Assembly: GCA_037447605.1 (NCBI GenBank)
Contig: CM074816.1
Location: 1,516,525 to 1,580,524 of the forward strand
Direction: 5' to 3'
Length of the DNA: 64,000 nt
DNA from: Zygnema circumcarinatum SAG 698-1b
Taxonomy: Eukaryota > Plantae > Zygnematophyceae
In this document: positions 6,625 through 52,100 of the stretch, one piece after another
How positions within the stretch are numbered: position 1 is the stretch's first letter
How the letters are laid out: every line of letters begins with the position of its first letter
Notes under the pieces: generated by a model
The model's database searches: none
What the model was told of the DNA's origin: nothing
The model's input: only the letters and a program-made list of their open reading frames with translations
Position numbers and translations under genes: made by a program

Positions 6625-8357
6625 ATGAGCGCGATAAATGTGACTCAAGTGCTCGTTTTGGACAACCCGAGCCGCTTCACTTCTCCGTTTCAGTTCGAAA
6701 TTTCGTACGAATGCGTTCGGGCGCTCAAAGACGGTACGTATTACATTTTCTAAAAATATAATATAATATTTTGAGGAAGACGGGAGGGAAAAACAAGGTT
6801 TGAGGTATAAAAATTTGGTAGAGAAGCAGAGGGAGGGGGAGGGGAAAAAGTGGGGAGAGTGTGAGTGAGAAAGTGGAAAGTGGGAGAGATAGAAAAGGGC
6901 AGAGTGGGAGAGAGGGAGAGGAGACGAGACGGAAGGGGGAAGAGAGGGAGCGAGAGAGAGGAGAAGAGAGGGAAGGGGGCAGAGATGGAGAGAGCGAGAG
7001 GAGAATAGAGGGAAGGGGGCAGAGAGGGACAGTGAGAGAGGAGAAGGGAGGGAAGGGGGCAGAGAGGGACAGTGAGAGAGGAGAAGGGAGGGAAGGGGGC
7101 AGAGAGGGAGAGAGAGAGGAGAAGAGAGGGAAGGGGGCAGAGAGGGAGAAAGAGAGAGAAGAAGAGGGGGAAGGGGGTAGAGAGAGAGAGAAGAGGGGGA
7201 CAGAGAGGGACGGAGAGGAGGACAGCGCGAGAGATTAGGGAAGAGAGAGGAGGGAAAGAGACAGAGAGAAAGCGACGAGAGAGAGAGACGGACGAGGGAG
7301 GGTATCTTGTTCCATGTATGTTTCGTTCCGTTTTGCTGTTCGTTCCAGTCTGAGTTTGAACCTTGTTAAAGCGCAGCATATGGCGTCGTTTCAACTTTTG
7401 AAATATTTGACGACGCTCCCTTTCGTCTCCAAAACGTTTAAAAAAAAAAAAAAGGGGAGGCCAATAAAAAGTACTTGAAGAAAAGCTTGAAAGGAAGCTT
7501 TTAAGAAAATTTCTCCTTAACAAGGAGAACTTGAAAAGGTGGTTAACATTTCAGCGCATTCCAACATGGCGGTCTCCGCGGGCTTCGCAAATGCCAGTTC
7601 TCGCCGCCACGAGCCCTATAAGACAACCTTTTTTTCTTACAGATTTCTCGAACAATTCTTAACGATTTTTCCATCTGAAACTTCTGGTTTTGCAGACTTG
7701 GAGTGGAAGCTGATCTACGTGGGGTCCTCTCAGGACGAAAAGTGCGACCAAGTGCTTGAGAGTGTGTTGGTGGGGCCGGTCAACCTCGGGACCTTCAAGT
7801 TCATCTTCCAGGTGCCTTTCTCGCCCCTCTCTCTCTCCCTCTCCCTCTCCCCATCCCTCCCACTCTCTCTCCCTCTCTCTCTGCCTTTCTGTGTCGTGTG
7901 CTCTCTCTCTCTTGTCTTTCTCTCCTCTCTCCCTCTCTGTCTTCTCTTTTCTTGCTTTGTATTTCTGCTCTCTCTCGTGCTCTTCGGGTCTTTAGAGTTT
8001 CTAGAGAAAACCCTCTCTCTCCCTACTCCCCCCTCTCATCCTCTCCTCCCTTTCCAGGCCGACCCCCCCAACCCCGAAAAGATTCCGGAAGACGACATTG
8101 TGGGAGTGACTGTCATCCTCCTCACGTGCTCATATATGGGAAACGAATTCATCCGAGTCGGATACTATGTAAACAACGAATATGAGGACGAGCAACTGAG
8201 GGAGGAGCCCCCTTCTAAAGTAATAGTCGACAAAATTCAACGAAATATTTTAGCCGATAAACCGAGAATCACAAAGCTGCCCATTCCATGGGACCCCGTT
8301 CCGTCGCCCTCGACTCCGGCGCAACCGTTTGAAAGCGAACCCGTGACCGAGTACTAG
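6625..8357 (+). CDS. ASF1: Histone H3/H4 chaperone ASF1; 3 exons (6625-6733, 7696-7811, 8058-8357), 174 aa
   Basis: MSAINVTQVLVLDNP..FQFEISYEC..LKD/DLEWKLIYVGS..YDQVL-type..ESVLVGPV..ADPP..GVTVILLTCSY..EFIRVGYYVNNEY is the canonical ASF1 core. Splice sites are clean. Confidence 0.97.
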
Positions 8358-11245: not shown

Positions 11246-13359
11246 GATAGCAAGACGACAAACGGATGAACATACGCCAAGTAAGGGACTCCCACCTTTA
11301 TAACGTGTATCGACTTTTTTGAAGAAGGAAGTAGACAACTTTAAACGCTTTTGTTGCTTTTGCTTATGATTTTCGAAGACTATCTCTGTGCGTGTACCTG
11401 CCTAACCTATGGAATTCTTTTTTTCTTCACTTGTGTCTACTATCTCCCCTAACTCACCCAGCATGATGCTTTGATGTTCGTTGGATTCATTACAGGTGAT
11501 TTTCTGACCATTAGAATTCCATGGACAGTTTTACTGGAGGAGGAAATAGATCAGCAATTTCTGTCTACCATCATAAGCTCACTTGCTTTCAATTTCTGTT
11601 AGCCATGGCGATGTTTCGAGACTCGGTTCAAAAACTTACGTTGGAACTGTAGAAGTGAGGCAGATTCATCATGCTTTTCAATGCGGGCAATTTTTTTTTT
11701 GTTGCATATGCGATATCTAGATATTTGGATGTTTCAGTAACAGGTTCGGGTGTTTACTGGCTACATTTTTGAGCTTGTTTTGGCCTAGTTTAGGATGGTT
11801 ACAGTCGTCCTTGTTGGCTACTTCAGGTATTTTCAGTTTGTTTTGGCCAGTATTTGGATTTTTTTCCTTTGGGTTCGGCGATGCTTTTATTTTCCTTAGG
11901 ATGGTTGGGCCACCCTCTCGAGTCTCTTCACCCCAATCTTTCTTGCTTTGGAAAAGCAACAGTTCAGACCGAATCTGCCGGTCCGTTCCTATAAACTTGA
12001 GCAAAATCCGTTAGTGTATAAGCTCTAATCCACTGCTAGTGCTCCTCTTTGTGCTGATGCCTCATCTCTCATAGCAACGCGTAAAACACTTGCTTTTATC
12101 AATCATGTTGCTGCATTTCTATCAATAGAGTTAAAAAAAACTAAGGAAAAGGTACATTCATAGAAAATTCTCCTATGGGTCGAGTGTAGAACTATGTTAT
12201 GAGCCCCGTACGATGATTTCAAAGGGAGGATTCAAGTCACATCCTTTTGGCAGTCGCGGACCTTCGTATACAAGTTGCGGAGGCTTAGCCCTTTTTCAGG
12301 TTCTGAAATTCGATGTTTTCTTATTAAAGAGGGCTTACCCCCCCCCCTCCCCCCCCAGCAAAAATCCTCCTGGATCCGTCTCTGCGTTTTGGTTTGTTAC
12401 TTCAAAGCAAGAAAAGGTGATGATATGATGTGGCATTGATCTCACGATGGCGATGATGCCATCAAATGTGCATGGTCAACATCATCACGGGGAACCACGA
12501 GGAACTGGTCGCAATGGACCTAAACACAACAGGAAAAAGCTAGGAGCTAAAAGCTACGCCTAGGCTCAACAAACCGAAAATGCTTGAAGCCCTCCATCGA
12601 AAGTCGCCGATGTGGAGTCGTCTGTAAGTTCAACGGCGCGTCGCAAATAGTCGCAGGACTCGTACGACGAGTCGCACATGCGATTCATCATCGCATAGAG
12701 CGTTTTCCAAATTGCGTCGCACGGCCAATAGCGCGCGTCGCATAGCATATCGCGCAGAGTGTCGCACAGAGCGTCGCAGCGGGGCAGCGACAGGGCGCGA
12801 AGTTGGTGATCGCCGGCCTCGCTCACTGGGGAAGGCAGAGAAAGCACTGCGTGCGCATCAAGATGAGCCGTCTGTGTGAGAGAAAACAGAGAGAATAATA
12901 ATGGAAATACGCATGGAGACACTCTTCTATGCTGGAAATAAGAACAATAATTTATAGAATAAATGCATAATTTGATGTCCACATGAAAAATATCGTATTT
13001 TAGGTAAAAATGTGAAGGCCTCGTCGTGAGACCTTTGCACAGCGGAGAACATAGTGGAGGGGATTAAGGGCTTCCGGAGTTCCATTCTCATCCCGCCCCC
13101 CCTCCTTCCAAAAAATTTCCCTTTCCCCACTTCCTCTGTTAAACTTCAAATCTGTATACCCTATACCCAGACCCTATGCCAGTAACTTCCTTACATCATA
13201 AGCGTAAAACGCTAAAATACCTTCCGTTGATAGTAACGTCTCAAATGTAAGTCGTTGACCTTCACGATTTGAGTCCTCACCTCTCCTAAAACCCCTCCTC
13301 AACCCCAAAGCCTCAAACCCCAAACCCTAAACCCTAAACCCTAAACCCTAATTTCGTCC

Positions 13360-16261
13360 TCAACCAACGCATCTTGGGATGCGAAAGTTCTTGGGATTGA
13401 TGCACTTTTTGACGCAGAGGACGCGGCCCTTCGCCCAGGCGGCGCCGCTGCCGATACAAATCCCCGCCTTTGGGCCCATACACTTCCGCCACGTGCCGCG
13501 GTATCGCACGCCGCAGAACGCGCTAATCACAGTCTGACACGTGTCCCCCTCGTCCCACGTGTACGCTTTGGCGCACTTCTCGGGGGGGACGTTCTGATAG
13601 GCCACACAGACCTGAGGGAGGGGCAATGCAGGGGTGGGTTAGATGGATGGGGGATAAACCCTAAGGAGAAAAAAACATTCGAAATATACATTGATGGTTT
13701 TTAGTGCTATTGTCAGTTGGAAATACAAAGGCAGGAGTTTGTTTGTACCTGCTGTCCCAAAAAGAGGTTGTTGCAGTTGATGCCGCGGTTCGCCTCATAG
13801 AACTGCAAGAGCGTAATTTGAGGGTTCCTTTGCAGGATCGATGCGCACCGCGCTGTTTTGAGGTCCGTTTCAGTTACAGTATCGACGCTCGTACACACAA
13901 TGAAGGGGATAGGGTCGCCAAGTACAACGCATACCTGAACCCATAAATGGGAAGAAAGGTAGAGGAAGGTGGGCGGGGGGGGGGAAAGGGGAATAAATTG
14001 AAGTGCAACGACAAGCAGCACTTCATTTACGATCAATATCATTTTCGGAGAGGTCAGATTTCAGAGATGTTAGTGTTCCTGGGTTTGGCCTATTAGGATT
14101 TTCAGATTCCTTAAGAGTTATCAAGACGGTTGTCGAGTTTGCGGACTTTCTGCGTTTCTTACTACATTCGGAATTTGGAGTGTTTGAAAAGTCATTACAA
14201 GTTTTAGTTAGTCATAGTGTTGCAGCCCTATTGAAATCTCAAGCAATTAGAGATTTTCAGGCTTTGAGGCTCCTTAGGGTTTTGCAAGCGTTGCCCGGTA
14301 TTTCGAAATTCACGGTGTTTAGGGTTCAGGGCCGACCAGCTTGTTGGGCGGAAGGCCGGCGGCGTCACAGACGAGGCCGGGGTTCAGCGTTGTGCTCAAA
14401 TCGCCGCCGGCCAATGAGAAGGTCTGCTCGATCAGCCCACACGTGTCTCCCTGCACGCGCGCGCTTGGGGTGTAGGGGTTTAGGGTTTTAGGGTTTTTAG
14501 GCTTTATAGGGTTTTTAGGGTTTTAGGATTTTAGGGTTTTGAAGGTTTCAGGGTTTTAGGGTTTTAGGGTTTTTCGGGTTTTAGGGTTTCAGGGTTTTAG
14601 GATTTTAGGGTTTCAGGTTTTTAGGGTTTTAGCTCAAAACCCGAGAACCGAATCTCTAAAGAAAGTTAAACACTAAACCCTATTCGCATGGGAATGGCTG
14701 CCTCACCGGTTGAACGCTGTAGAACACTTTGCATGAACTCACTCCGGTCGGATCGATGAACAGTTGAACGCCCGGAGTCAATGTGCACGCGCTCACACTC
14801 GACTGCAGAACACAGCAAAACTGTCAATACGCCGACTTTACCATTTTTGTTTTTTTTTTTTTTTTTTGAAAAGAAAGCTCAAGTTTGAATTCCTAGGGTT
14901 TGAAGTCGCTTAGGGTTGGTTACCAGCTCTTGTACGGATGTTTTCATATTCCGAAGAGGTGGGTTTTCCAGGGAGCAAAGAAATGGACTCACCCCTATGG
15001 AAGGATAACTCCTGTCGATGAGTTCTTGGACTGTAATGCCGAAGGAGTATGCGACAAGGGGACACGTGTCGCCTGTTTGGACGGTGTAGGACCCCCCCCC
15101 CCCATAGACTTGTGCTTGAGCAGCTGCACAGAGCCACGCAATAATAAAAAAAAAATGAAAATAAATAAATAAATAAATAAATGTATCCAGAATATTCAGG
15201 TATGAGCAAAAGTCTGACGACCAAACAAATGAAAATAAAATCGAAATATGCCAAAAAGTAAGCGCTTTCAGATGTGTGTGCTAACTTCGGTACTGTCAAC
15301 ATTGAGCAGAACTTATTAGATTCCTCAAATGCCCTAAACCCTAGTACCCAAACCTCCTGCAAACCCTAAAACCCTGAAGACCCTTCAATCCCCTGCACTA
15401 TAGAAACCCCAATCACTCTAAAACCCTGAAGACCCTTAAACCCCCTGCACTATAGAAACCCCAATCACTCTAAAACCCTGAAGACCCTTAAACCCCCTGC
15501 ACTATAGAAACCCCAATCACTCTAAAACCCTGAAGACCCTTAAACCCCCTGCACTATAGAAACCCCAATCACTCTAAAACCCTGAAGACCCTTAAACCCC
15601 CTGCACTATAGAAACCCCAATCACTCTAAAACCCTGAAGACCCTTAAACCCCCTGCACTATAGAAACCCCAATCACTCTAAAACCCTGAAAACTCTAAAA
15701 CCCTGAAGACCCTTAAACCCCCTGCACTATAGAAACCCCAATCACTCTAAAACCCTGAAGACCCTTAAACCCCCTGCACTATAGAAACCCCAATCACTCT
15801 AAAACCCTGAAGACCCTTAAACCCCCTGCACTATAGAAACCCCAATCATTCTAAAACCCTGAAGTCCACTGCTAAAAAATCAGAAACCCTAAAAGAGCAA
15901 AAACCTACCCGGAACACAGAGCGGCTTCCCCGTGCAGGCCGCGGTTTGAAGGTAGCCGCGGAAGCAGAGGCAGTGGTAGTTCCCGTCTCCGTTGTTAACG
16001 CAACTTCCGGGACCGCAGGGATTAGGGCTTGAAGCACCACACACATCAACTGCAAACCATGCAAGGAACATGGGAAATGGTTCAAACATGTTAAAGAGAA
16101 GTTATGGATTCCTGTAAAGGCTTTAGAGACTTGAGAGAGAGGGGGAGAGAGAAAGAGAGAGAGTGAGAGAGACAAAGAGACAGAGACAGAGAGAGAGAGA
16201 GACAGAGAGACAGAGTGAGAGAGAGAGAGAGAGAGAGAGAAAGGAAGAGAGAGAGAGAGAG

Positions 16262-16342
<81 letters not shown>

Positions 16343-16375
16343 AAGAGAGAGACAGAGAGAGAGAGACAGAGAAAC

Positions 16376-16406
<31 letters not shown>

Positions 16407-16427
16407 GAGAGAGAGAGAGAGAAAGAA

Positions 16428-16470
<43 letters not shown>

Positions 16471-19400
16471 ATAGGGAAAGAAACATCCTTACTAAGAGCG
16501 CATGTTTGAGTTCCGTCGGTGTTTTTCGCCACGGTGTAGCCCGCCATGGAGCACGTGCAGCTGTACTTTCCGCTGCCAAGGTTTGAACACGAGCCCGCTC
16601 CGCAAGGGTTCAGGGGACCGCACGCATTGCCATTCGGCGCTGGAGGATCAAGGATCATTAAACCCCACTTAGATACATTGTTAAACCATAGACAATGTTA
16701 GGGGTGGCGAATTCTCTACCGGTCTAAGACCAACTGCTAAATGTTTAGCCTGCTTAAAGCATCCTGCGTTTCCCTTCCGTCTTTTGTACCCACTACGTCG
16801 ACAATTTGCCACCAGCAATACATCACATGATCCATGCTTTTAGGGTTTTTAGGGTTTTAAGGGTTTTAGGGTTTTTAACATCACATTCCACACAGCAGCA
16901 CAAGAAACAGAACAAGGAATCGCCCTCTGAGTCACGTCACGAGGGATGCAGAGTGTGTGAGTGATGTCGAGGTCCATCGCTACATACGCGCTAAGACGGG
17001 GTAGAGGGGTGATGTTGTGATGCCGCATATCCCCCTCTTAATACGAGCATGGCCGTTATATCCCCACGTCTTTCCAAAGGAATTACGGATCAGCCAAAAC
17101 GGAACGCCGGATTCAGTTCCGTAGCCGACAACAAGGACCGTGTGAGTGAGCTGCGCTCCCGGGACGCAGTCTCCCTTTGAATCCGTGAATAAGTTCCACT
17201 GCACACATATATATATATATATTTAAGGATATCAATTTGAGACAGAGAAACAATCTCGCAGCACATATAGAAAAAGTGCTAGAAAAGAAAGAAAAGAAAA
17301 AGGAAAAGAAAGAAGAAAAGTACTAAGTCTCTGTCTAGAGGTCATTCTTATGTCAGAGCAAGCAATCCTTTTTGATGACATGGTGAACTCTAGAAACACT
17401 TTGACGACTAAAATTCTCAAAGACTTAGTACAGTAACGTCTAAGATAAGAATGAGCTTAAAAATGAAAGTGGATCAATTACCGTTTTCCATGACCGCAGT
17501 TCCGTTGTCAGTGTGATGTAGGCTACGGCCGGCTGCCGGCTCACTGCCGCCATGAGGGCTTTCTCGTTCAACGGAGGGACCCCCTCAAACCTCGTTACTT
17601 TCACCACTCCCGGCACTCCATTCTGAACAGCAAACAATGATTCAAATCAAATATGAGTTTTCAAAGGAACATTGAAGAGAAACCCTAAACCCTAATCTTC
17701 AAACCCTTGGTTTTCGGAGAAGAGCTGTACATTGCAAGTCTGAGGAAGACCCGATTTTCCCGAAACGTATGGACCATAACTCGTGGTTTGCGGAAGGCCT
17801 GAAGTTTGCTTGGCGAGCCATTCCAGAATTTGTTCCGGCCAGCCTCCCTTGCAGCCGCCGAAGCAGTCCACAATGTCCTGCTCAGCCAATGAGGTGGTGA
17901 CAGCTGTCCCCGGGGGAGACCTCAAAAGACTGTACGCACTTTCCACGGCTCCAACCACCGCAAATATGGCGCATGTTCCTGCAAGAAATTTGAAAAAAAA
18001 AAGAAAAAACCAAAGAAAGTAATTCATTAATTCGACCCCGACCAAATTGTCAACCATATGCTTTTATATATAAGCATTCGACAGGAGGAACGACAAGCAA
18101 CTTTGCTCTTATAAGGAGTAGTTACTTCCTGCCCTTTAGGCCTCCAGCAGGAGCCACTAGCAGGAAAGAAAGAATCAGGAGTCGATCTGAAACCACCCTA
18201 AACCCTAAACCCTAAACCCTAAGCCCTAAACCCTAAACCCTAAACTCTAAACCCTACTCACCGCAAACCCCCTGATCTTTGGGGTATATCATCGTCCAGC
18301 GCTTATCTACGGAGGCCGGCAGGCGGTCCATCCAGCTGGCGTGCCGCGATAGGGCGTTCAGCTTCGTGTAGCTGATGGCGGCCGCGGGCTGGGGCAGCGC
18401 TAGGCCCGATATGGCTGCATGTTGAACAACAACATGCGCAGAACAATGTTTGCAAGTTAACGTTAAGCTTCATCTTCAACATGTAATGACACCCATCACT
18501 TTCACTTCAATGCTTCATGATCATCATGATGATCATCAGTTTCGTGCCTCATGTCGTTGTTTTCAAATGAAGCGAAGTGGTCACAACCATGGTAATCCGT
18601 CGAGCATCGCGGCATGTGAGTGAATATGCGCACCCTACAAACCCTAAACCCATGAAGTCAAAGAGTTGTGCCACAACTCGCGTGCGACGCGTCGCTGTCC
18701 ATTTGCCTTTTGTCGCAAGTGCCGCCGGCGAATCGCCGTTTTTTACAAGGTGGGACGTGACAGCTTATAAAAGCCGCCGAAGCCGCTTAGTTTCCAGAAG
18801 CCCTGAACCCTAAACCCTAAACCCTAACCCTAAACCCTAAACCCTCCGAGTGCCGCCGGCCGAAAGCTCACATGTTTGAGAGAAGGAGGAGGGCGGCACC
18901 GGCAGCCATAGCTGGTTGCCGATGGAGGTGTCTCCGGGCACCTTGCAGGGCCACTGCGTGAGGGGTGCCCCACTGGACAAATCGACCCCATCGAGGCAGA
19001 GACCATTCTCCACATGCTTCCACTGAATAGCCCAATCGTAATCTCGGATGTAATTTATCATCCACTGTTCCGAGTTTCCGTAATGGCAATCTGCATGAAA
19101 CAAGTGAACAGTGAGTGAATTCAAGTTCACTAGAATGTGAGGGTTTCCATGCACAATCCTAAGCTGTAAGTCTCTCATTTCCCCTGCTTTCGCCTCCGTT
19201 TCCTCCCTCCTTCCCACTCTCAGCCTGCTCCTCCCTCCCTTCCTTACTCCTAAATCGTCCTTCCTTTAACCACCACCTCCCACTCGTTCTTTCTTACTCC
19301 TTTCCTCCCCTTCCGCCGTTTCTCCTCCTTCCCTTCCCTCTTTCCCTCTTCTAGCCCCCCTCTCTCCTCCTCTCTCTCTCTCTCCCGCCCTCTCTCTCCC

Positions 19401-19686
19401 TCTCCAATTAAGCAGCGCAGAGGCAGGCTGCCCTCACCCCACACGAAGAGCTGCTTTCCCCATTCAGTGCTCCCGTAGGGCACATCCAAACAGCGCCCAC
19501 TCTTTTTATCTTTAAAGACGTAACCATTCGACTGCGGAACAACGTTCCATATGGCGCCGTTGCCTACAAGCGTATCTGCAGTAAATAGAAAAGACGAAAA
19601 TCAATTGCCTTGGTTTGTACTTACATATATTTCCATGAGTACATCTTGATATCTAGTCTCGGACTCTGTTAAAACTCGTGTATTCA

Positions 19687-19717
<31 letters not shown>

Positions 19718-22700
19718 AAAGTTTGTTGGCAGCACTTACAGTCCCTGAGAACCATGGAACTTGCAATGTCGACACCTGTCGCCATCCATGCAACTGTCGA
19801 GTCCGGAGGCAGCACCATGATGGACCCATCTATCGGCGAAAGCCAATCTTCCAACGGCTCTGTAATTTGAGCAGACCAAAAAAAACTAAAAAACTTTTGA
19901 GGAAAAAGAAGAGTCAACGACAGAAAAAGGAAGAGAAAACAGACGAAATGAACGAGAAAACTCTCCTACAACAAGTTTCTGCGCTAAGTAAAACCAATCT
20001 TCCTGTCAAAAGCCAATAATCCCCACCTACGCTTCCTTCTTTTTCCTTCACTTTTTTCTTCAGTAAACTAACCATTCAGTACATCAAACTACGAAGTGAA
20101 CTTCTTTTCGAAGAAATTACCTGTTTTAGAAACGAAGGATTGCGGAAAGGACAGCCATAATTGGCTGTCCAGTTTCACTCCAAACCCTGAGGTTTTGCAA
20201 GTGTTCTGCACAAGCTGAGCTCCGTTCTCTATGTTTCCTCCGTCAATGCACAGTCCCGTAAAAGCATTTTGCCATTGAACGGCGGAGTCAGAATTTCGCA
20301 CATAGAGCGGTATCCAATAACCGCCATAAGAATTCCCACAATCTGCAAACCCTAAAAAAACCTCACTTAGCATTATGCAGCGAACTTCAGTACATAACAT
20401 TCAACCGCCGAACATTTCGAAAGAAATATCACTCTCTGAATGATAAATAATCATCATCTGAACCCTAGCAACCTTGGTCTCTTGAAAGTAATTCCTATAA
20501 GTTTTTGTGTTTCTTACCCTGTTGCACAATTTGCAGGCCCACCGTGGTTGAAGCTCCCGGCACATCTAAGCAGAAGCCTCCCGAAGATACAAAATAATTA
20601 TAATTATTAAATTGGTAGTTCGTGAAGAGTTCCCACGTGCTCCCGGAGTTTCCATCGTACCCATTTGGATCTGCGGAAAGGTTTAGGAAAAGGTCATGAA
20701 AACAAGGCAAGTAAACACATACATCACATCCACATCTCCCCCCCCTCCCCCTCCCCCTCAGCCATCCCCCTCCCCTCCCCCCTCCCCCCTCCCCCTCCCC
20801 CCCTCCCCCTCCAGCCATCCCCCATCCCCCTCCCCCTCCCCTCCCCCTCCACCCCCCCTCCCCCCCTCCCCCCTCCCCCCTCCCCTCCCGAAGCCATCCC
20901 CCTCCCCTCCCCTCCCCCCCTCCCCCCCTCCCCCCTCCCCCCCTCCCACCTCCCCCTCCCCCCTCCCCTCCCCCCCTCCCCCCCTCCCCCCTCCCCTCCC
21001 CCTCCCCCTCCCCCTCCCCTCCCCCTCCCCCTCCCCCTCCCCCTCCCCCTCCCCTCCCCCTGCCCCTCAGCCATCCCCCCTCCCCTCCCCCCCTCCCCTC
21101 CCCTCCCCCCCTCCCCTCCCCCCCTCCCCCTCAGCCATCCCCCCTCCCCTCCCCCCCTCCCCTCCCCCTCTCCCCCTCCCCCTCCCCCCTCCCCTCCCCC
21201 CCTCCCCTCCCCCCCTCCTCCCCCTCCCCCCCTCCCCTCCCCCCTCCCCCCTCCCCTCCCCCCTCCCTCCCCCTCCTCCCCCCCTCCCCCTCCCCTCCCC
21301 CCCTCCCCCACTCAGCCATCCCCCATCCCTCCTCCCCCCCCTCCCCCTCCCCTCCCCCCTCCCCCTCCCCCTCCTCCCTCCCCCCCTCCCAGCTGGCTTA
21401 AATCCCCCTCACCCTCCCCCTCCCCCTTCCCTCCCCCTCCCCCCTCCACCTCCCCCTCCCCCTCCACCCCTCCCCTCCCCCCTCCCCTCCCCCTCCCCCC
21501 CTCCCCCCTCCCCCTCCTCCCCCTCCCCCTCCCCCTCCCCCCTCCCCCCTCCCCCTCCCCCCTCCCCCTCGGCAAATCCCCTCCTCCCCCCCTCCCCCCC
21601 TCCCCCTCCCCCTCCCCCCCTCCCCCTCCTCACCTCCACTCACCCCCTCCCCCTCCCCTCCCCCCCTCCCCCCCTCACCCCCTCCCCCCTCCCCCCTCCC
21701 CCCCTCCCCTCCCCTCCCCCCCTCCCCTGCCCCCTCAGCCATCCCCCCTCCCCCTCCCCTCCCCCTCCCCTCCCCCTCCCCCCTCCCCCCTCCCCCCCTC
21801 CCCCCTCCCCCTCCCCCTCCCCCCTCCAAGCCATCCCCCCTCCCCTCCCCCCTCCCCCTCCCCCTCCTCCCCCTCCCCCCTCCCCCCCTCCCCCCTCCCC
21901 CCCTCCCCCCTCCCCCCTCCCCCCTCCCCCTCCCCTCCCCCTCCCCCTTCCCCTCCCTCCTCAGCCATCCCCCCTCCCCCTCCCCCTCCTCCCTCTCCCC
22001 CCTCCTCCCCCCCCTCCCCCCTCCCCCCTCCAACCATCCCCCTCCCCACCTCCCCTCTTTCCCCTCCCCTCCCCTCCCCTCCCCCTCCCCTCCCCCCACT
22101 CTCCTCTTTCTCCCCCCCCCTCAGCCCAAATCTCCCCTCCTCCTCCCCCTCCCCCTCCCCCTCCTCTCCCCCCTCCCCCGCCTCCCCCCTCCCCCTCCCC
22201 TCCCCTCCCCTCCCCCCTCCACCCCTCATTCCCCCTCCCTCCACTCCCGGCCATCCCCCTTCCCCCTCCCCTCCCCTCACCCCCCCTCCCCCTCCTCTCC
22301 CCCCCCTCCTCCACCCCCCTCCTCCCCCCCCTCTCCCGCCCTCTCTCTCCCTCCCTCACACACACATTGTGAGAGGACCATCCCATCGCCGGCGGAACCG
22401 CCAGAGGCCGCCCACGCATTGTTCGACCCGACAGGTGCCACCATGAAGGAACCGTCCTCGGGGGATGTCCATTCTGAAAGCAAGAAGAGAGAGAGAGAGA
22501 CAGGGAGGGAGGGAGGGAGGGAGGGAGGGAGGGAAAGAGGGGCGGGGAGAGGGGGGGGGGGGNNNNNNNNNNCTCCCCCCTCCTCCCCCCTCCCCCTCCC
22601 GCCCTCTCTCTCCCTCCCTCACACACACATTGTGAGAGGACCATCCCATCGCCGGCGGAACCGCCAGAGGCCGCCCACGCATTGTTCGACCCGACAGGTG

Positions 22701-24372
22701 CCACCATGAAGGAACCGTCCTCGGGGGATGTCCATTCTGAAAGCAAGAAGAGAGAGAGAGAGACAGGGAGGGAGGGAGGGAGGGAGGGAGGGAGGGAAAG
22801 AGGGGCGGGGAGAGGGGGGGGGGGGTTGGGGAGAGCGAGAGAAGGAGAGGGATGTTAGTATATGCAAGAAGATGATGAAGAAAAAAGGCGAGTTTGAACA
22901 GATACCAAAGACCTTGATGTGAATCTCAAACAAGAAATAAGTTCAGAAGTCGAAAAGGTTATTTTTTCCGACGTACCGACTGGTGCGGTTGCGGTCAACT
23001 TTCTCCTGTTGGATCCAAAATCTGCATCAGAAATCTTAGAAACCGTTGTAAAATAAGTTGTACGTTTTTTTGAATTAGCAGAGTTACCAGCATCTCAAGG
23101 TTTCTGCTAGCCAAAAGATAAAATAGGGCTCTACTATTTTCCAGTTGACCTCTTTTCACTCTCCGCTTCACTCTCTCTCGATGCGTCCTACCTTCCGTTT
23201 TATTTCTCATTCACAATATAACCGCCGAACTAAAGAATTGTTCCCCCCCCTTCCCTCCCCCTCCCCTCCCTCCCCCTTACGAGCTGGGAAGGGGCCGGCC
23301 TGAAATTATAACTATAATCTATACTTCAACCTTTAGTATTTCCTCACCTGAGAGTTGGCTCGCAACACTATTGGATGCTTCAGAGATTTGAGGAGTCGCT
23401 GCGGACGAACAAAGAACTGGTACATCCCCACAACAAGCAGCTCCACATGAGTATTCGATCCCCCGTTTCCTCATCCTATTCCTCTCCGTATCCTCTCCCT
23501 CCCCCTCCGCCTCTCCCTCTCCCTCTCCCTCCCCCTTCCCCTTCCTTCTCCACTGATACTAGCACCGAAAATGGCGCGCGAACCTGCCTGCCATTTTTCC
23601 TTCAAAAGCCGCAAAACACCTCCACCTCCCTCTACTAACTCCGCCGCCATAGTCTTTAAGTCTTCAAGTCTTGCTATGAGTGTTCAATAAAAGTCAATAA
23701 AAGTCAATAAAAGTCAACGCATTGACTTGCATGCGGAAGTTACATCAAAACAGAGCATGCGTGGGTACAAACACACTGTACCCTCCCCACTCCCGCCCAC
23801 TCTCCCTCCCTCCCTCCCTCCACCTGCACCCTCTCTCCCCCACCTCCAATAACCCCCTAACTCCCCCCTCTGCCTCCCCCTCCCTCTTAGCCTTTCCTAC
23901 CCGCTCCCTCACCCTCATCCCTCCACTATTCATCCTGTCCTCACTCTTACAATCTCGAAATATCTGTCTCACTTCTCTCCTTTCCTTTCTCGTCACTCTG
24001 ATTCCTCCCCCTCTCTCACCCTCCCTCCCTCGTCGCACTCTTTACTTCCCTTTTCCTCTCCCTCTCTCTCTCCATCTCCTCCTCACACCTCTCAAATTTC
24101 CTCCCTCACCCGCTCTCTCCTCCTCCGTCTCTGCCCACTCGCTTTCCATCCTCTCTCTCCATACTCTCTCGTTACTCCGTTTTCAACTCCCCTCCTCCCA
24201 TCCCCTCTATGTCTTCATTACATCCTCCCTTACTATTCATCGTCACGATATTTTCTGCCCCTCATTTCCCTCCTTATCGCTTCGCTCTCTTTCCCTCCTC
24301 TCCATTCGATCGCTCCCTCCTCCTCCTCTCATCCTCCCACCCTCACTCCCTCTCACTCCCCTTTCCTTTCCT

Positions 24373-24424
<52 letters not shown>

Positions 24425-24563
24425 TCAACTCCACCCATTCAACCCCTCCTCCAATCCTCCTCCTCCCCTCCAGCTCTCCGTCCATTGTACCTGCCAGAAT
24501 CAGTACCCCGCATCCAACACTCAGCCGCCCGCCCAAGCCCACCATTTCCGGCCCCCTTCCCAT
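13360..24563 (-). CDS. Multidomain probable secreted protein: ricin-B lectin x2 / papain-family C1A protease / EGF x2 / LysM x4, ~980 aa, ~20 exons (5' exons tentative)
   Basis: Phase-consistent exons. Tentative: 24563-24491, 23398-23348. Supported: 23021-22977, 22473-22360, 20670-20518, 20342-20121, 19859-19740, 19575-19438, 19090-18872 (CLDV/CLDG, QLW ricin motifs); 18414-18262, 17978-17731, 17622-17482, 17198-16988 (LPASVDKR..KDQGVCGTC, HTVLVVGYG, WLIRNSFG); 16639-16493, 16049-15909 (NPCG.G.C..Y.C.C EGF); 15123-14993, 14802-14707, 14450-14337, 13934-13749, 13611-13360 (YTVQTGDTC, YSVQPGDTC..LNPGLVC LysM). Confidence 0.85.
15369..15862. repeat. 52-bp tandem minisatellite (~9 copies), intronic
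   Basis: Unit AAACCCTGAAGACCCTTAAACCCCCTGCACTATAGAAACCCCAATCACTCTA repeats nearly perfectly, with one short internal duplication near 15680. Confidence 0.95.
16130..16465. repeat. (GA)n microsatellite, intronic
   Basis: Visible GA run between the two EGF exons. Confidence 0.95.
20720..22345. repeat. ~1.6-kb C-rich low-complexity tract ((CCCCCT)n-like) inside an intron
   Basis: Almost entirely C/T with a recurring CAGCCATCCCC motif. It lies between ricin exons 22473-22360 and 20670-20518. Confidence 0.95.
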
Positions 24564-24931: not shown

Positions 24932-25722
24932 GGAAAATGCTATATTATTCACTCCTTTTTTGTCTACACACAGACTTTTTTTCGCCGGGCAGGTTCTATT
25001 TTGGAAAAAAGAGGATTAAAAACGAAAAATGTTTTTTCTCACCTCTTTGGAATCGATACACACTTTGTTCTGGCGGGCGGATTGCGTCGCAGATCGCACC
25101 ATGGCAGATCGCCGTTCGATCTGCAGCTGGGCTCCGTCCCAGCGAATGGCACGCGGCCACGTGTCCAACCCAAACCGGCTCGAAGATCCGTACGAGAAGT
25201 CGTATGATCGCAGCTTCGAGGAAAGGCGAGATTTCGTACATTGCGAGCTTGGTCCAATCACAATTTGCCACGTCTATTAAAAAAGCACGTGACACATGGT
25301 GATTGGTCCAAGCTCGCAATGTACGGTATTTCGCCTTTCCTCGAAGCTGCTATAATACGACTTTCGTACGGATCTTCGAGCCGGTTTGGGTTGGACACGT
25401 GGCCGCGTGCCATTCGTTGGGACGGAGCCCGGCTGCAGATCGAACGGCGATCTGCCGTGGTGCGATCTGCGGCGCAATCGACGGCGGGGATTGAACATAC
25501 GTGTGAAGGACGCACACCCGCGAACGATCTCGTGGCGGACGGATCCTCCGCTACGAGCGGATTGTGAAATAAAATCTGCCCGCCGGAACAGGGTGTGTAT
25601 CGATTCCAAAGAAGTGTGAAAAAAACATTTTTTGTTTTTAATCCTCTTTTTCCTAAATTAGAACCTGCCCGGTGAAAGAAGGTCTGTGTGTAGACAAAAA
25701 AGGTGTTAATATTGCATTTTCC
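24932..25722. mobile_element. ~790-bp foldback (long-TIR MITE-like) element
   Basis: Left arm 24932-~25270 is the reverse complement of the right arm ~25295-25722, which carries a ~90-bp insert at ~25490-25580. Termini are GGAAAATGC...GCATTTTCC. Flanks AACAAAACAA / CAAAAAACAA match 8/10. Confidence 0.8.
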
Positions 25723-28210: not shown

Positions 28211-30267
28211 CTACGAAGTTTGCTTGTCTCCCCCCGCCTCCTCTTCCACATGCTTTATGGTCGTTCGAATGCATCCTGCACCATGCATACATGCATGCAT
28301 GCATGCATGCCGTACAGGTTCAACGTACGGATTTAAGTAAAGGGAAGGCGCAGCAGCAAAAGAAGTTGCAGGTTTACGATCAATAGAAATTTTTTATCGG
28401 GGTTCGGTCTAATTTAAAACCTTCCAAGTGGGGAAGGGTTTGAACTCACCGTCCACTGCTTCAAATCGGAGCTCCTTCCGAGAGTCAAGTCTGCTGCTGA
28501 ACTCAAATCTGCATACATTAAATTGGTTATTTTTATTGAAGTTTGGTCCTTTCGTAAAGCTTTCATGAAATGGACTAGGTATGATCAGATGATCACTTCA
28601 AAATGGAAGGGGGAGGGCGGGGAGAGAGAGGGAAGCGGGATAGAGAGAGGGAGGGATAGAGGGAGGAGAGAGGGAGGAGAGTGGGAGGAGAGAGGGAGGA
28701 GAGAGGGAGGAGAGAGGGAGGAGAGAGGGAGGAGAGAGGGAGGGGGAGAAAAATGGGGAGGAGAGAGAGGAAAGACAGAAGTAGAGAGGGGGGGCCATAG
28801 CATGTGAAAGTGGGAGACGAAGAGTGGCCAGAGGCAACAAAAGGACTGAACTTTGCTCCCCTTTGCCTAACTGCACCAATTCAACAAAAGCACCAAAGCA
28901 ACAGCTTAAAAGACAACAAAAACGCACATGTTGGAGAAGGAGACGTTCAGTTCTGCTCCGAGTTTCTTTGTCGCTTCCATGAGCACAGTTACGATCTCCG
29001 TTTTCCGTGTGCTCGCCAGCAGCATGTCGTACTCTCCGTTCACTACAACGGCAAAGAAATTGTCGTTAAGTTCGCTGAGACGGAGCGAGTCGACCTTCTG
29101 CAGGGCAACCCTCCGCTTGCTCTGAAACGTGTCCGGCTGAAGGAGGTAGAGAGAGGTCTCGGAGAGCACGAGGAGGCGCCTCTTCACTCGGAGCTCCTCG
29201 CTCACCTTCACCACTCGGTCCGCGAACAGCACGGCGGTATCACCTGCGAGAGCCTCTCCGTGACATTAGGGAGAGAGAAAGGAGGAGGAGAAAGGGGGAG
29301 AGAGCGAGTGGGGGGAGGGAGAGGAAGTGAGGGAGAGAGCGAGGGAGGAGGAGGGGGAGGACAGAGCGAGAGATCCTCTCCCGGGGCGAGGGAAAGAGGG
29401 TGGGGGGAGCAGAGAGAACGAGCCCTAACCCTAATCGTAACCCTAACCCTAACCCTGATCTATCCCTAACCCTCTCACTGACCTTTACCTAAACCCGAGC
29501 CCCAACCCTAACCCTGACCTTAACCCTAGCCCTAGCCCTAACCCTAATCCTAAATCTAACCCTAACCCTAACCCTAGCCCGAACCTCCGCTCACTCTCCC
29601 TCTCCTCACCTGCTTTCAGAAGCAAGCCTAACCCTAATCCTAACCCTAACCCTAATTCTAACCCTAACTACAACCCTAACCCTAACCCTAACCCTAAGCC
29701 TAACCCTAACCCTAACCCTAACCCAAACCTCCACTCACTCTCCCTCTCTTCACCTGCTTTCAGCAGCAAGCCTAACCCTAATCCAAACCCTAACCCTATA
29801 CCTAACCCTGCCCCTAACCTTAACCCTAGCCATAACCCTAACCCTGACCCTAACCCTAACCCTAACCCTAACCTTAACCCTAACCCTAACCCTAACCCTA
29901 ACCCTAACCCTAACCCTAACCCTAACCCTAACCCTAATCCTAACCCTAACCCTAACCCTAACCCTAACCCTAACCCGAACCCTAACCCAAACCTCCGTTC
30001 ACTCTCCCTCTCCTCACCTGCTTTCAGCAGCATGGTTATCACCGCATGGTTAGTAGCCACCTGCACATAGTCGCCATGGATGCTCTTCAGCGCTCTCTTC
30101 CCCTCCCTCCCTCTCCCTCCCTCTCCCTCTCCCTCGCCAGCAGTGCTCTCAGGGAAGGATTGGTAGAAATCCCCCTCGTCCTCTGAAATGGATGGCATGG
30201 GCATGCCATCCGTGCCCATGCCATCCGTGCCCTCCCCAATGCCCTCCTCCTCCCCATACTCCCCCAT
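28211..30267 (-). CDS. Myosin tail homology 1 (TH1) domain protein, plant 'myosin heavy chain-related' type; exons 30267-30018, 29243-28928, 28508-28450, 28275-28211
   Basis: [86 protein letters not shown] matches the TH1 family. Phases are consistent. An extra 5' exon is possible. Confidence 0.88.
29426..29990. repeat. Interstitial (CCCTAA)n / TTAGGG-type array in intron 1 of the TH1 gene, interrupted by copies of the exon-intron junction
   Basis: Visible hexamer array with two embedded ~45-bp copies of the exon 1 donor region. Confidence 0.93.
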
Positions 30268-49163: not shown

Positions 49164-52100
49164 AAATTATGAAATTGAAGTCATGACCTTGCTTAAGAAA
49201 TGTTTTATCTGTTCTAGAAAGAACGAAGATCTGACCTGGCACGCAAGTGAGGATGCCATCCGGAGAGTCGGCGGCATATCCCAGCGGGCAGGCGCAGGCG
49301 TACGTGCCAGGTGTCGCCACCGCATTGAGACACGTCCCCACGCCGCAGGGGTTGCTTGCAGCGAAGGTGCAAGGGGAGACTGTTCCACAGGAGACACTCA
49401 TACGGTTGTTTACTAAGTACTTCAAATCGCATGTAGCAACAATTAAGCGCTTTCCTAAACGTTTGATTAAGAGCTTGCATTGGAAATAGGAAGGAAATCA
49501 GAGGTGAAAAAGCCTTTACACTATACGTTATGGGTCTGGGTAGTTACATGCATACGCGGGTCAGAAATGCACGGAGTGGTACACCATTTGATGAAAAAGA
49601 TTTTCGAAGGTTAGTTCATTGAACAAACATGATCGGACATGAACATCTACTTAATGGAATTGACCACCCACGTGGTGCACATGTTTGCGAGTTGTCGCTG
49701 TTGGTCACTGCCACGAATCCCTCCGAGCAGCGACATTAGTTCGTAGAACCATTCACAGTACACACACCATTTCCGCACGGGTTCATTGTACCTGGTCCAT
49801 TTGTGGTCATAAGAACTGTACTGGCATAGTTTCTCGTAAAGCATGGATCATAGTCTGCATCCACCAGACACGAGAGTACGAACAAGATCAATATTTTTCC
49901 CTTGCTAGAAGCTGAGAATGGAGCGGTGCAATGATCGCGAAACTCCAAAAAAGAAAAGTGAACATGCTTTCATTCTAATGAGCTAGAGAAATATCGCCAT
50001 CCTCTCGACTAACTGACCGTTTAGCTATGTGATTTCATCCGGTGGTTCATTAAGATTGATGGGACAATCACAAGGGCTGTCTTAGCCTTGCGCATTGCAA
50101 GCATGTTGCGTGTACCATCAGCTCATAGTTCACGCTAAGTTAAGCTAAGCGAGTAAGCTAGTTCGAGCCACGATAGTAAGCTACAACGTCAACTGCCACG
50201 GTGATGAAAGTTGAAGATCGTGAATGAAATCGACAACTCCCTCTCACCTGCAGACTTCACTACAGGCATAAGTGCCGGAAGGGTGTTGATTCCGCATGTC
50301 CCCAAACCGGCGGATATTTTGAGGCGCATGTAGCCCTGCTCGCCCCAGTTTTGGCCCCACGAGTTGCGGATGATCCAAAAGGGTGGATCCGCACTCAAGT
50401 CGTATCCGACCACCACCACGCTGTGATCCACTCCGTTAGAAAAGCAGTCTTCATCGTCAAACACCCCCTGCAACAAAAGCAATTTTGCTGTAAAAATGAG
50501 TGTTGTCAGATGAATATCGGAAAAGTAGTTAGTAGGTAATGTCACTGATGCCAACAATTAAGAGTCAATCACGTGAGCGTCTTGAGAAAATAGAAGCAAG
50601 GTCGTTTCCCAAATGGCAGAGGATCAAAATGAAACAAAGAATCGATGAGTTTCCAGCAGAGCCATGAGAAGATCTATATTGTTATTACTCCGTTGTAGTT
50701 GATGAAGTTGGAACTGCTCGCTTCAATATTCACAATAGCCGGTTGCTGCTGCAGAATGAGCAGTAAGCCCAGCCAGCCGTTGAAGGCCACTTGCTCAAAC
50801 GATGTAATTTTAAACCTGTTATCACCCTGCAAGTTACAACCCCATTATAAGTCAAATAAATCTTTATGAAGTTGTTTTTCCTAATTGTGCACAAAGTCCT
50901 GCCATGAAGGAGAAAGCAAACTCAAGGAATCCAAGCACCTTCAGTTTGTGCTCTTCTTTTCCTTCACGCAGACTGGTATACAAAAAAGGATGAGCTGAAA
51001 TTGTTACCAAGCAAAAACTTCTTTGCTGCTGTGCAGGTCACTCTTTCGCCTATCTCCTTGGCCAGCTCTCATTTCAGCAGAGGTTTTTTGTACCTTTCCG
51101 CAGCTCGGTTGCCCCGTGAAATTCGATGCTAAAGTGAGGGCGTTGTTTGCGGCATAGTCAAGCGCCTCCTGGGGCCATCCCCCGGACGCGCAGGTCTTGC
51201 CGGTGGAGGAGCAGCTCAGGAGCTGCTGCTCTGCCAACTGCGGGGTCGGAAGATTTCCACCGTTGACGATGAAAATTGCGCTTTCAATGGCAGATATAGA
51301 AGAAAATACCCAACAAGAGCCTGCAAGAAAACAGCAACATGAATCAGCCTCTGACATGCATTTGAGTTCTCCATGTCCTAAGTCAGCATCCTTCTCTAAA
51401 ATGCCTCAAACGGTGAAAACCAGTATGACCAAATGTCGCAGCCTAACTACAGATAAGTAAGAAAATCTTTATAGAAAATTTCTGTCAAGGTTGTTGAGGA
51501 CCAAGTGCATGCAATGTAGAATGCTTTTGAGATACATGACCTCCTGGATCGTATTTGCAAAATGGCAATACAGCCATAATGACTCAGGTCCTTCAAATGC
51601 TCAAAGAAGCGCTGAGCACTCACTGCAGCTTCCTTGATCCTTGACGCCTTGGACGGCTCCTTCCACCGTCCAATTCCAGGCGATGGCCACCTGCCACGAA
51701 GACTTGCCATTTCTCTGCCTCAAGTATCCCGTTGTCGCATATCGAAAATAGCGGTTCAGTTTAGCATATGATGTGATGGGGAGGCTCGTGTTTAAGCCGA
51801 AACCTCGTCCCCCTACATGTCGACAGGAGCAATACAAAATTTCAAAGAGGATTTCTGCTGCTTAACCTGGGTAATCTACGACTTCGCAGACCTTTTTTGC
51901 AAAAGAGACATCTTAGATGCTCATTTTGGAAGTGTTTCTCAAAAATTTAACCTTTACTGGGAATCAAGCGAGGACATTCTGAATCACAATATAACCCACA
52001 ACGAAATCGAAAGCATAGTCGAGACCTCACCAAAAACACAAGTGTTCGTATCTGAGGTGATGTTGTACCCAATATCGCAAGTGCAGGTCGGCTGGCTACC

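Follow-up and report, generated by a model that had tools for sequence, protein, structure and literature searches.

A predicted ricin-type lectin, papain-type protease and LysM protein encoded at one locus of the zygnematophyte alga Zygnema circumcarinatum

Papain-like proteases are central to land-plant immunity, and LysM domains serve plants as sensors of chitin and peptidoglycan. A stretch of 64,000 nucleotides from the alga Zygnema circumcarinatum SAG 698-1b (assembly GCA_037447605.1, contig CM074816.1, positions 1,516,525 to 1,580,524 of the forward strand) raises the question of whether both kinds of module can be encoded, together with ricin-type lectin domains, by one gene. In this text, that whole stretch is called the window, and position 1 is its first letter. 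A reading made earlier from the letters alone (hereafter, the sequence-only reading) had joined exons between positions 13,360 and 24,563 into such a chain. The analysis described here indicates that the locus very likely holds one intact minus-strand gene of 19 exons, whose predicted product consists of two ricin-type units, a C1A (papain-type) protease, two EGF-like modules and four LysM units. In a wider account, this 19-exon gene of about 965 residues is a member of an algal multigene family and encodes a secreted, glycan-tethered protease that lacks the I29 propeptide; this account as a whole is considered reasonably probable.

The exon chain and the lectin-protease join

When mapped by splice signals, the 19 exons run on the minus strand from 24563 to 13360 and form a single frame of 965 codons plus a stop. 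All 18 introns are of the GT-AG type. The acceptors read CAG in 18 of 18 cases, each behind a pyrimidine run, and the donors all begin with GT, the only weak one being that of exon L2b (GTCGGC). The exon boundaries were picked so as to hold the frame open and, consequently, the open frame is not by itself an independent test of the chain. The window has a eukaryotic build: its exons are short, its introns are rich in simple repeats, and nine gaps of 10 N interrupt its 64 kb. The exon chain of the sequence-only reading was thus recovered, with colinear minus-strand exons, GT donors, CAG acceptors and a frame that is kept for 965 codons. As for the architecture that it proposed, the module order and the C1A core stand, while several of the ricin, EGF and LysM units lie below the Pfam cut-offs. 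From the 5′ to the 3′ end of the gene, the exons are as follows.

24491..24563, minus strand: candidate first exon; opens with ATG, phase 0-1, spans 24 codons and one further base and encodes a hydrophobic core that resembles a signal peptide
22977..23021, minus strand: exon x1, with the motif RRKL; 45 bases, phase 1-1, CAG acceptor, GTACGT donor
22629..22736 (copy A' at 22366-22473), minus strand: exon A of ricin unit 1; divergent first leaf, 48% identical to P0025 54-86
20518..20670, minus strand: exon B of ricin unit 1; phase 1-1, RicinB_lectin_2 E 0.013, CLDV motif
20121..20342, minus strand: exon C of ricin unit 1; phase 1-1, LCID and QLW motifs
19740..19859, minus strand: exon D of ricin unit 2; phase 1-1, no in-frame start upstream
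19438..19575, minus strand: exon E of ricin unit 2; phase 1-1, RicinB_lectin_2 E 1.1e-4, 23.2 bits
18872..19090, minus strand: exon F of ricin unit 2; phase 1-1, Ricin_B_lectin E 4.6e-4, LCLDG and QLW motifs
18262..18414, minus strand: exon p1; linker of about 30 residues with LN-x-L-SRHAS, then the mature N-terminus of the protease (LPASVD) and Gln19 (DQGVCG)
17731..17978, minus strand: exon p2; catalytic Cys25 (GTCAIF) and N-terminal lobe, Peptidase_C1 E 5.4e-11
17482..17622, minus strand: exon p3; central part of the C1A domain, with 53-56% identity to P0025 and P0044
16988..17198, minus strand: exon p4; His159 (THTVLVVGYG), Asn175 (NSFG) and C-terminal lobe, Peptidase_C1 E 6.6e-16
16493..16639, minus strand: EGF-like module 1 (egf1); phase 1-1, 50-51% identical to P0025 and P0044
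15909..16049, minus strand: EGF-like module 2 (egf2); phase 1-1, 58-59% identical to P0025 and P0044
14993..15123, minus strand: first part of LysM unit 1 (L1a); Pfam LysM 28.2 bits against a cut-off of 20.9
14707..14802, minus strand: last part of LysM unit 1 and beginning of unit 2 (YSVQP), placed by phase and splice sites and colinear with the tails of the relatives
14337..14450, minus strand: main part of LysM unit 2 (L2b); GDTC...LNPGL, 38% identical to P0025 628-661, donor uncertain
13749..13934, minus strand: LysM unit 3 (L3); Pfam LysM 18.8-20.0 bits, just below the cut-off, 46-48% identical to P0025 and P0044
13360..13611, minus strand: last exon, with LysM-like unit 4 (L4) and the stop; Cys-rich, with 46-54% identity to P0025 and P0044 at their C-termini

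The lectin is very likely joined to the protease, as predicted from the phase of the exons, from the open reading frames (ORFs) of related proteins and from the colinearity of the junction. Both exon D and exon p1 open in phase 1, and no in-frame methionine precedes them (for exon D, the frame is bounded by stops at 19687-19965), so that neither of them can start a gene. In addition, three relatives carry a ricin-type unit and a C1 domain in one chain. P0001 (387 amino acids) is made of a signal peptide, a ricin-type unit and the N-terminal half of C1, and P0044 (664 amino acids) of a ricin-type unit, C1, two EGF modules and LysM; P0025 (812 amino acids) has a hevein-like, Cys-rich start followed by a ricin-type unit, C1, two EGF modules and four LysM units. 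Each of the three is an unbroken ORF on a Logan contig (1.5-3.4 kb; runs SRR8128902-07) and, for this reason, behaves as a spliced transcript. Exons A, E, F, p1-p4, egf1, egf2, L1a, L2b, L3 and L4 are colinear with these proteins at 38-68% identity. At the junction between exons F and p1, the residue spacing is within one of that of the relatives, and a linker of the form PSSF...LN-x-[FL]-SRHAS is common to them.

Alternatively, the locus might consist of two transcription units, with a secreted double-ricin lectin (first exon to exon F) lying beside a protease-EGF-LysM gene (p1 to L4). A lectin-only isoform produced by intron retention is possible, since read-through of the exon F donor hits a stop after 13 codons. 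Nevertheless, exon p1 starts in phase 1 with neither an in-frame methionine nor a signal peptide upstream, exon F has a phase-1 end with a good GTGAG donor, and the ricin-type unit and the protease are contiguous in the transcripts of the three relatives, where the linker PSSF...SRHAS spans the junction. Two separate units are considered quite improbable, and a single gene, with the lectin joined to the protease, is the preferred reading. With respect to the relatives, the ricin-type unit in the P0044 transcript contig (L005 1-820) is preceded by a stop-containing, GA-rich stretch of low complexity, about 560 bases long. This 5′ part looks like a retained intron or unspliced RNA, in which case the true start of P0044 would be missing.

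Regarding expression, 0.33 of the sampled words of the stretch are found in one run that is guessed to be RNA and bears the same organism label, and five runs of unspecified kind hold 0.46-0.51 of them, while exons make up 0.30 of the stretch. Runs from unrelated organisms hold about 0.10 of the sampled words, owing to simple repeats. These shares are at most a weak hint of expression. A search for the product of the gene itself, made with exon F and then with region 60-131 of the stop-free frame 18840-19265, did not bring up any fragment of it, and exon F had no match above 47% identity among 1.84 billion representatives.

Head, protease and tail of the predicted protein

At the level of single exons, the ricin Pfam matches in the head have E values of 1e-4 to 1e-2 and all fall under the gathering score (23.2 bits for the best, against 25.6). 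When exon F was compared by phmmer with the same collection of representatives, 45 hits were obtained, and strong Ricin_B domains were present in 17 of the 20 that were scanned. The top hit is P0001, in which ricin and C1 domains are combined and which passes the ricin profile with 43.1 bits against 29. In alignments, exon B corresponds to the first of the canonical leaves of ricin lectins, and exon C has 39-44% identity with the ricin-type units found in P0001, P0025 and P0044.

The two halves of the head are internal paralogues. Exons A and D are 50% identical and exons C and F 41.5% identical, and the introns of A/B/C and D/E/F lie at matching positions, all of them in phase 1-1. Each unit contains two canonical CLD...QxW leaves and a divergent N-terminal segment of the A/D type, which, according to the alignment, has no counterpart in single-domain ricin lectins. 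In the AlphaFold model of the homologue P0025, the segment of this type has a predicted local distance difference test (pLDDT) score of 31-49, and the eight strands that come next are modelled with confidence. It is likely that the predicted head forms two beta-trefoils. The doubling of the ricin-type head is what is new here with respect to the relatives, which have a single unit.

The protease domain is recognized by exons p2 and p4, with Peptidase_C1 scores of 43.4 and 59.5 bits, respectively, against a cut-off of 20.7. The whole catalytic set (Gln19, Cys25, His159 and Asn175) is there, within the motifs DQGVCGTC, THTV..GYG and NSFG. In phmmer alignments, residues 2-81 of exon p2 correspond to residues 26-103 of the best PDB hit or to residues 25-99 of cruzipain. 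Thus, residue 2 of the exon aligns to chain residue 25 or 26, and the cysteine of GTC can be taken as the catalytic Cys25. Exon p2 matched 21 PDB sequences (cruzipain, caricain and similar) and exon p4 matched 157, the best being procerain, cathepsin H and actinidin. Exon p4 is 68% identical to P0025, and its conservation (59-68%) is the highest in the protein. The protease model of the homologue P0025, which is 42-68% identical in the protease exons, superposes on ananain, actinidin and cathepsin S, that is, on the mature papain type, with template modelling scores of 0.85-0.88 and a root-mean-square deviation (rmsd) of about 2 Å.

C1A enzymes normally need a propeptide for folding and latency. 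No Pfam match to the I29 propeptide was found in exon p1, in the upstream frames or in P0001, P0025 and P0044, whereas the ordinary cathepsins P0048 and P0050 do carry I29 (PF08246). Since only about 30 residues, with no I29 match, separate the lectin from the mature N-terminus, the predicted protease is built without the usual propeptide. This is its most unusual feature, and it was overlooked by the sequence-only reading. Exon p1 matches no Pfam family; its identity to the linker and N-terminal sequence in P0001, P0025 and P0044 is 41-51%. The motif LN-x-[FL]-SRHAS is located about 12 residues before the mature N-terminus in all the ricin-headed members seen (P0025 228-240; P0044 90-102). 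This SRHAS motif of the linker is a candidate processing or cleft-occupying segment. In the P0025 model, the linker is disordered or of low pLDDT and, thus, the model is silent on whether the head or the linker fills the cleft.

Perhaps the protease domain is not a working enzyme and serves, instead, as a binding module, bait or decoy in a multivalent adhesin or a receptor-like wall protein. The catalytic residues Gln19, Cys25, His159 and Asn175, together with the cysteines of the Cys22-Cys63 type, are retained in this gene as well as in P0025 and P0044, and the conservation of exon p4, at the top of the protein, also argues for a functional enzyme. By contrast, the lack of an I29 prodomain would be in line with a loss of activity, as would the substitution of Trp26 and Trp177 of papain (CAIF and NSFG are found here), and papain-fold proteins without the catalytic cysteine do exist (PDB 2b1m). 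On balance, an inactive domain is regarded as improbable, and the protease is treated below as a predicted endopeptidase.

The tail is composed of EGF-like and LysM-like modules. Both EGF exons show the six-Cys pattern and score 16.7 and 14.8 bits with Pfam EGF, for which the cut-off is 21.5; the EGF of the relative P0044 reaches 25.1 bits. Introns interrupt LysM units 1 and 2. For units 2 and 4, Pfam gave no match, and they are known only by their Y-x-[VW]-x-x-GDTC start and by their colinearity with the relatives; unit 4 is homologous to a more canonical LysM-like unit of proteins from Mesotaenium. In the model of the P0025 tail (mean pLDDT 68), four beta-alpha-alpha-beta units come after EGF-type hairpins. 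Among PDB entries, this model matches best with Ecp6, a LysM effector that binds chitin (E 1.4e-5), and further matches include the LysM pairs of NlpC/P60 proteins, SleL, CEBiP and NFP. One of the units superposes on the LysM of a fern chitinase with an rmsd of 1.2 Å, and the EGF pairs of LRP2 and fibrillin are matched weakly.

The 5′ end, the assembly gap and the surroundings

The protein is probably secreted by means of a predicted signal peptide. The best 10-residue Kyte-Doolittle mean of the candidate first exon is 2.52, compared with 2.58 for the signal peptide of P0001, and the exon ends in phase 1 at a GT donor, which fits exon x1. For exon x1, there is no Pfam match and no homologue. 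Its RRKL motif had been said to resemble a processing site, a suggestion for which no support was obtained. The exon itself is placed by its phase and its splice sites. An alternative first exon at 23474-23348 was rejected, its hydrophobic core being weak (1.60), and a hevein-like exon was looked for upstream and not found.

This part of the gene also contains a gap in the assembly and a long simple repeat.

22563..22572, no strand: assembly gap of 10 N in the intron upstream of exon B, with one copy of exon A on each side
20741..22357, no strand: degenerate simple repeat of 1.6 kb, C/T-rich on the plus strand, which fills the A'-B intron

The gap is flanked by a perfect duplication, in which positions 22333-22562 equal 22596-22825 (230/230 bases) and the identity reaches the edge of the gap. 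At the other edge, 23 low-complexity bases (22573-22595) differ at 9 positions from their counterpart. Consequently, exon A is present on either side of the gap, at 22736-22629 and at 22473-22366 (A'). The two copies reflect either contigs that overlap and were left unmerged or a tandem duplication of 263 bases that is very recent. Exon A has 108 bases and phase 1-1, begins with AA and ends with T, so that the codon at an A-to-A' junction would be TAA; thus, at most one copy of the exon can be coding. Either copy yields the same mRNA and, therefore, the gap has no effect on the protein model. Furthermore, A' and the 90 bases upstream of it share one contig with exon B through L4 and the stop. 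Ricin unit 1 and the protease are therefore on a single contig by way of the A' copy, and only the first exon and the 45-base exon x1 depend on the scaffold join.

These observations bear on the possibility that the 5′ end is mis-assembled, either because the join at the gap adds the start of another gene or because a real duplication of exon A disrupts this one. Such an error is suggested by the position of the gap, within the locus and beside 1.6 kb of simple repeat, and by the 9 mismatches in 22573-22595. Nevertheless, the identity of the flanks at 230/230 bases points to overlapping contigs, A' and exons B to L4 lie on one contig, so that only the first exon and x1 hang on the join, and the same mRNA results from either copy of exon A. 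A 5′ mis-assembly is considered very improbable, and the intact 19-exon gene is retained.

In the A'-B intron repeat, Tandem Repeats Finder detected periods of 6, 7 and 13, with 71-73% matches. A plus-strand ORF of 593 codons (20665-22446), rich in Pro, Ser and Leu and with an extensin-like look, was discarded as a by-product of this C/T-rich simple repeat, and the Gly-rich frames on the minus strand of the same intron were likewise discarded as simple-repeat artefacts.

Several points weigh against the account as a whole. For the first two exons, and hence for secretion, the basis is the fit of phase and splice sites together with hydrophobicity. Both ricin-type units have a divergent first leaf, which is the part modelled with low confidence (pLDDT 31-49) in P0025. 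When the exons of the tail are scored one by one, two LysM units out of four and both EGF modules are under the Pfam cut-offs, and the GTCGGC donor of exon L2b is weak. In addition, the activity of a C1A enzyme without a propeptide is questionable, given that one is normally needed. Finally, the product of the gene is absent from the protein collections searched, an absence that is uninformative on expression.

Other features were observed in the introns and around the gene. Telomere-type 7-mer arrays occur in or beside many introns (13297-13351, 14473-14632, 16838-16877, 17690-17710, 18194-18246 and 18801-18845), and the one at 18194-18246 sits in the p1-p2 intron. Relative to the coding strand, the arrays are polarized, with G-strand copies just after the donors in the introns before p1, p3 and L1a and C-strand copies towards the acceptors in the introns before egf1, L2b and L3. 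Most of the intron between EGF-like module 2 and the first LysM exon is occupied by a 52-base unit repeated about nine times (15366-15864; 89-99% identity). Outside the gene, an ASF1 histone-chaperone domain is encoded on the plus strand at 7521-8354 (E 2.3e-52), and the TH1 tail of an unconventional myosin on the minus strand at 28909-29265 (E 1.8e-22). Two similar stop-free frames, at 24999-25349 (minus strand) and 25208-25564 (plus strand), both contain ...LRAW[TS]NH...FLEAAIIRL..., which suggests that about 350 bases were duplicated in inverted orientation immediately ahead of the candidate first exon.

A family of algal proteases and its possible role

To judge from sequence comparison, the gene belongs to an uncharacterized multigene family of streptophyte (zygnematophyte-type) algae. 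The family is defined by a conserved body, consisting of the protease, two EGF modules and four LysM units, with its exon plan, onto which interchangeable N-terminal binding heads are placed. Head swapping may have occurred by the shuffling of symmetric phase-1 exons. P0025, P0044 and P0001 resemble the present gene in their module order, in a prodomain-less C1A domain with the motif CG[ST]C[AS]IF and in the SRHAS linker. They differ from it in having one ricin-type unit each, where this gene has two, and they may or may not come from this species. The architecture is not unique, since these three proteins also join a ricin-type unit to C1A and two of them, P0025 and P0044, add EGF and LysM modules.

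In Mesotaenium endlicherianum, the proteins ME000065S09001, ME000065S09004 and ME000110S_11032 (P0047, P0046 and P0049, respectively) have the same C1A-EGF-LysM body. A second, divergent papain cassette is also found within the window (about 49200-51330, in the parts that were checked), and its introns have the same position and phase at three checked sites, namely before G-x-C, before p4 and after p4. In the Mesotaenium proteins and in this second cassette, the heads are of the leucine-rich repeat (LRR) type or absent, rather than ricin, and identity is 25-51%. The EGF1-like exon of the second cassette contains an in-frame TAA at 49736-49738 (minus strand), in the frame that aligns to EGF1 (...NGSTN*CRC...). 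The cassette may be broken at this point or may be spliced differently. A protein search with P0025 returned three Mesotaenium family proteins and missed P0044, so that it cannot be used to estimate the size of the family.

Several known systems share part of this design. The RD21-type proteases of land plants combine I29, C1A and granulin domains, are secreted or vacuolar and act in defence. As in RD21, a cathepsin-L-like C1A domain is followed here by a Cys-rich C-terminal extension; in contrast to RD21, no exon of this gene matches I29 or granulin, and lectin modules are found instead. In bacterial LysM-NlpC/P60 endopeptidases, LysM tethers a papain-fold peptidase to a GlcNAc polymer, and the enzyme cuts wall peptides. 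These proteins (Thermus thermophilus, PDB 4uz2/4xcm; the LytE/LytF class of Bacillus) may be seen as the closest functional analogues, and their LysM pairs are matched by the model of the P0025 tail. Nevertheless, the peptidase is NlpC/P60 and not C1A, LysM is N-terminal, and neither EGF nor ricin is present; the relation is one of analogy and not of membership. In cathepsin C, also called DPP1, the exclusion domain stays attached and shapes specificity. This enzyme (P0053; PDB 1k3b and 3pdf are among the hits of exon p4) likewise bears a beta-rich N-terminal domain other than I29 on its C1A domain. Cathepsin C is the closest structural precedent for a C1A enzyme whose N-terminal domain is something other than a propeptide. 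It keeps a propeptide in addition, however, and the exclusion domain is no lectin trefoil.

The association of C1A peptidase domains with LysM domains is already on record. Table S3 of a survey of 21 species, among which there is no zygnematophyte, lists six architectures of this kind, all from Chlamydomonas reinhardtii (Van Holle and Van Damme 2019, PMC6362431). As in the present gene, C1A and several LysM units (two to three in Chlamydomonas) are found on one chain, and those proteins are also uncharacterized; they are known by their catalogue entries, have no ricin-B domain and carry galactose-binding-like, SRCR, WSC or C-type lectin partners instead (PMC6362431). Fusions of lectin modules with C1A are thus not without precedent in green algae (PMC6362431). 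The statement that no characterized protein has the full architecture agrees with the literature searches made here, in which none was found; likewise, these searches brought up no description of a family with LysM and papain domains in the Zygnematophyceae.

The combination of modules suggests how the protein might work. Once secreted, it would be held by its LysM tail on polymers that contain GlcNAc, such as chitin or peptidoglycan, while the ricin head would bind a second glycan. The endopeptidase, tethered in this way, would cut proteins at the glycan surface. The target may be microbial surfaces, in defence or in feeding, an option that is given not quite an even chance. The wall or mucilage of the alga itself is a clearly less probable target, and some other target, or none, takes the remaining share. 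The lean towards action on microbes comes from the large size of the family and from its combination of a fixed body with heads that vary, which suggests a diversifying recognition.

A more specific proposal is that these proteins form an extracellular system that recognizes and then cuts. According to it, lectin or LRR heads would take the place of the propeptide, both aiming and gating the protease, and the enzyme would become active solely upon engagement of a microbial surface by the head and the LysM tail. The doubled ricin head would then be a specificity variant generated by the shuffling of phase-1 exons. Taken jointly, these ideas are speculative and rather unlikely to be correct in full.

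If the account is true, this large family, which belongs to the green algae nearest to land plants, would provide a testable view of defence or wall-remodelling tools that were assembled before plants reached land, as well as a natural example of a glycan-targeted protease. To this picture, the Zygnema locus would add a double-ricin head and a clean example of modules carried by symmetric exons.

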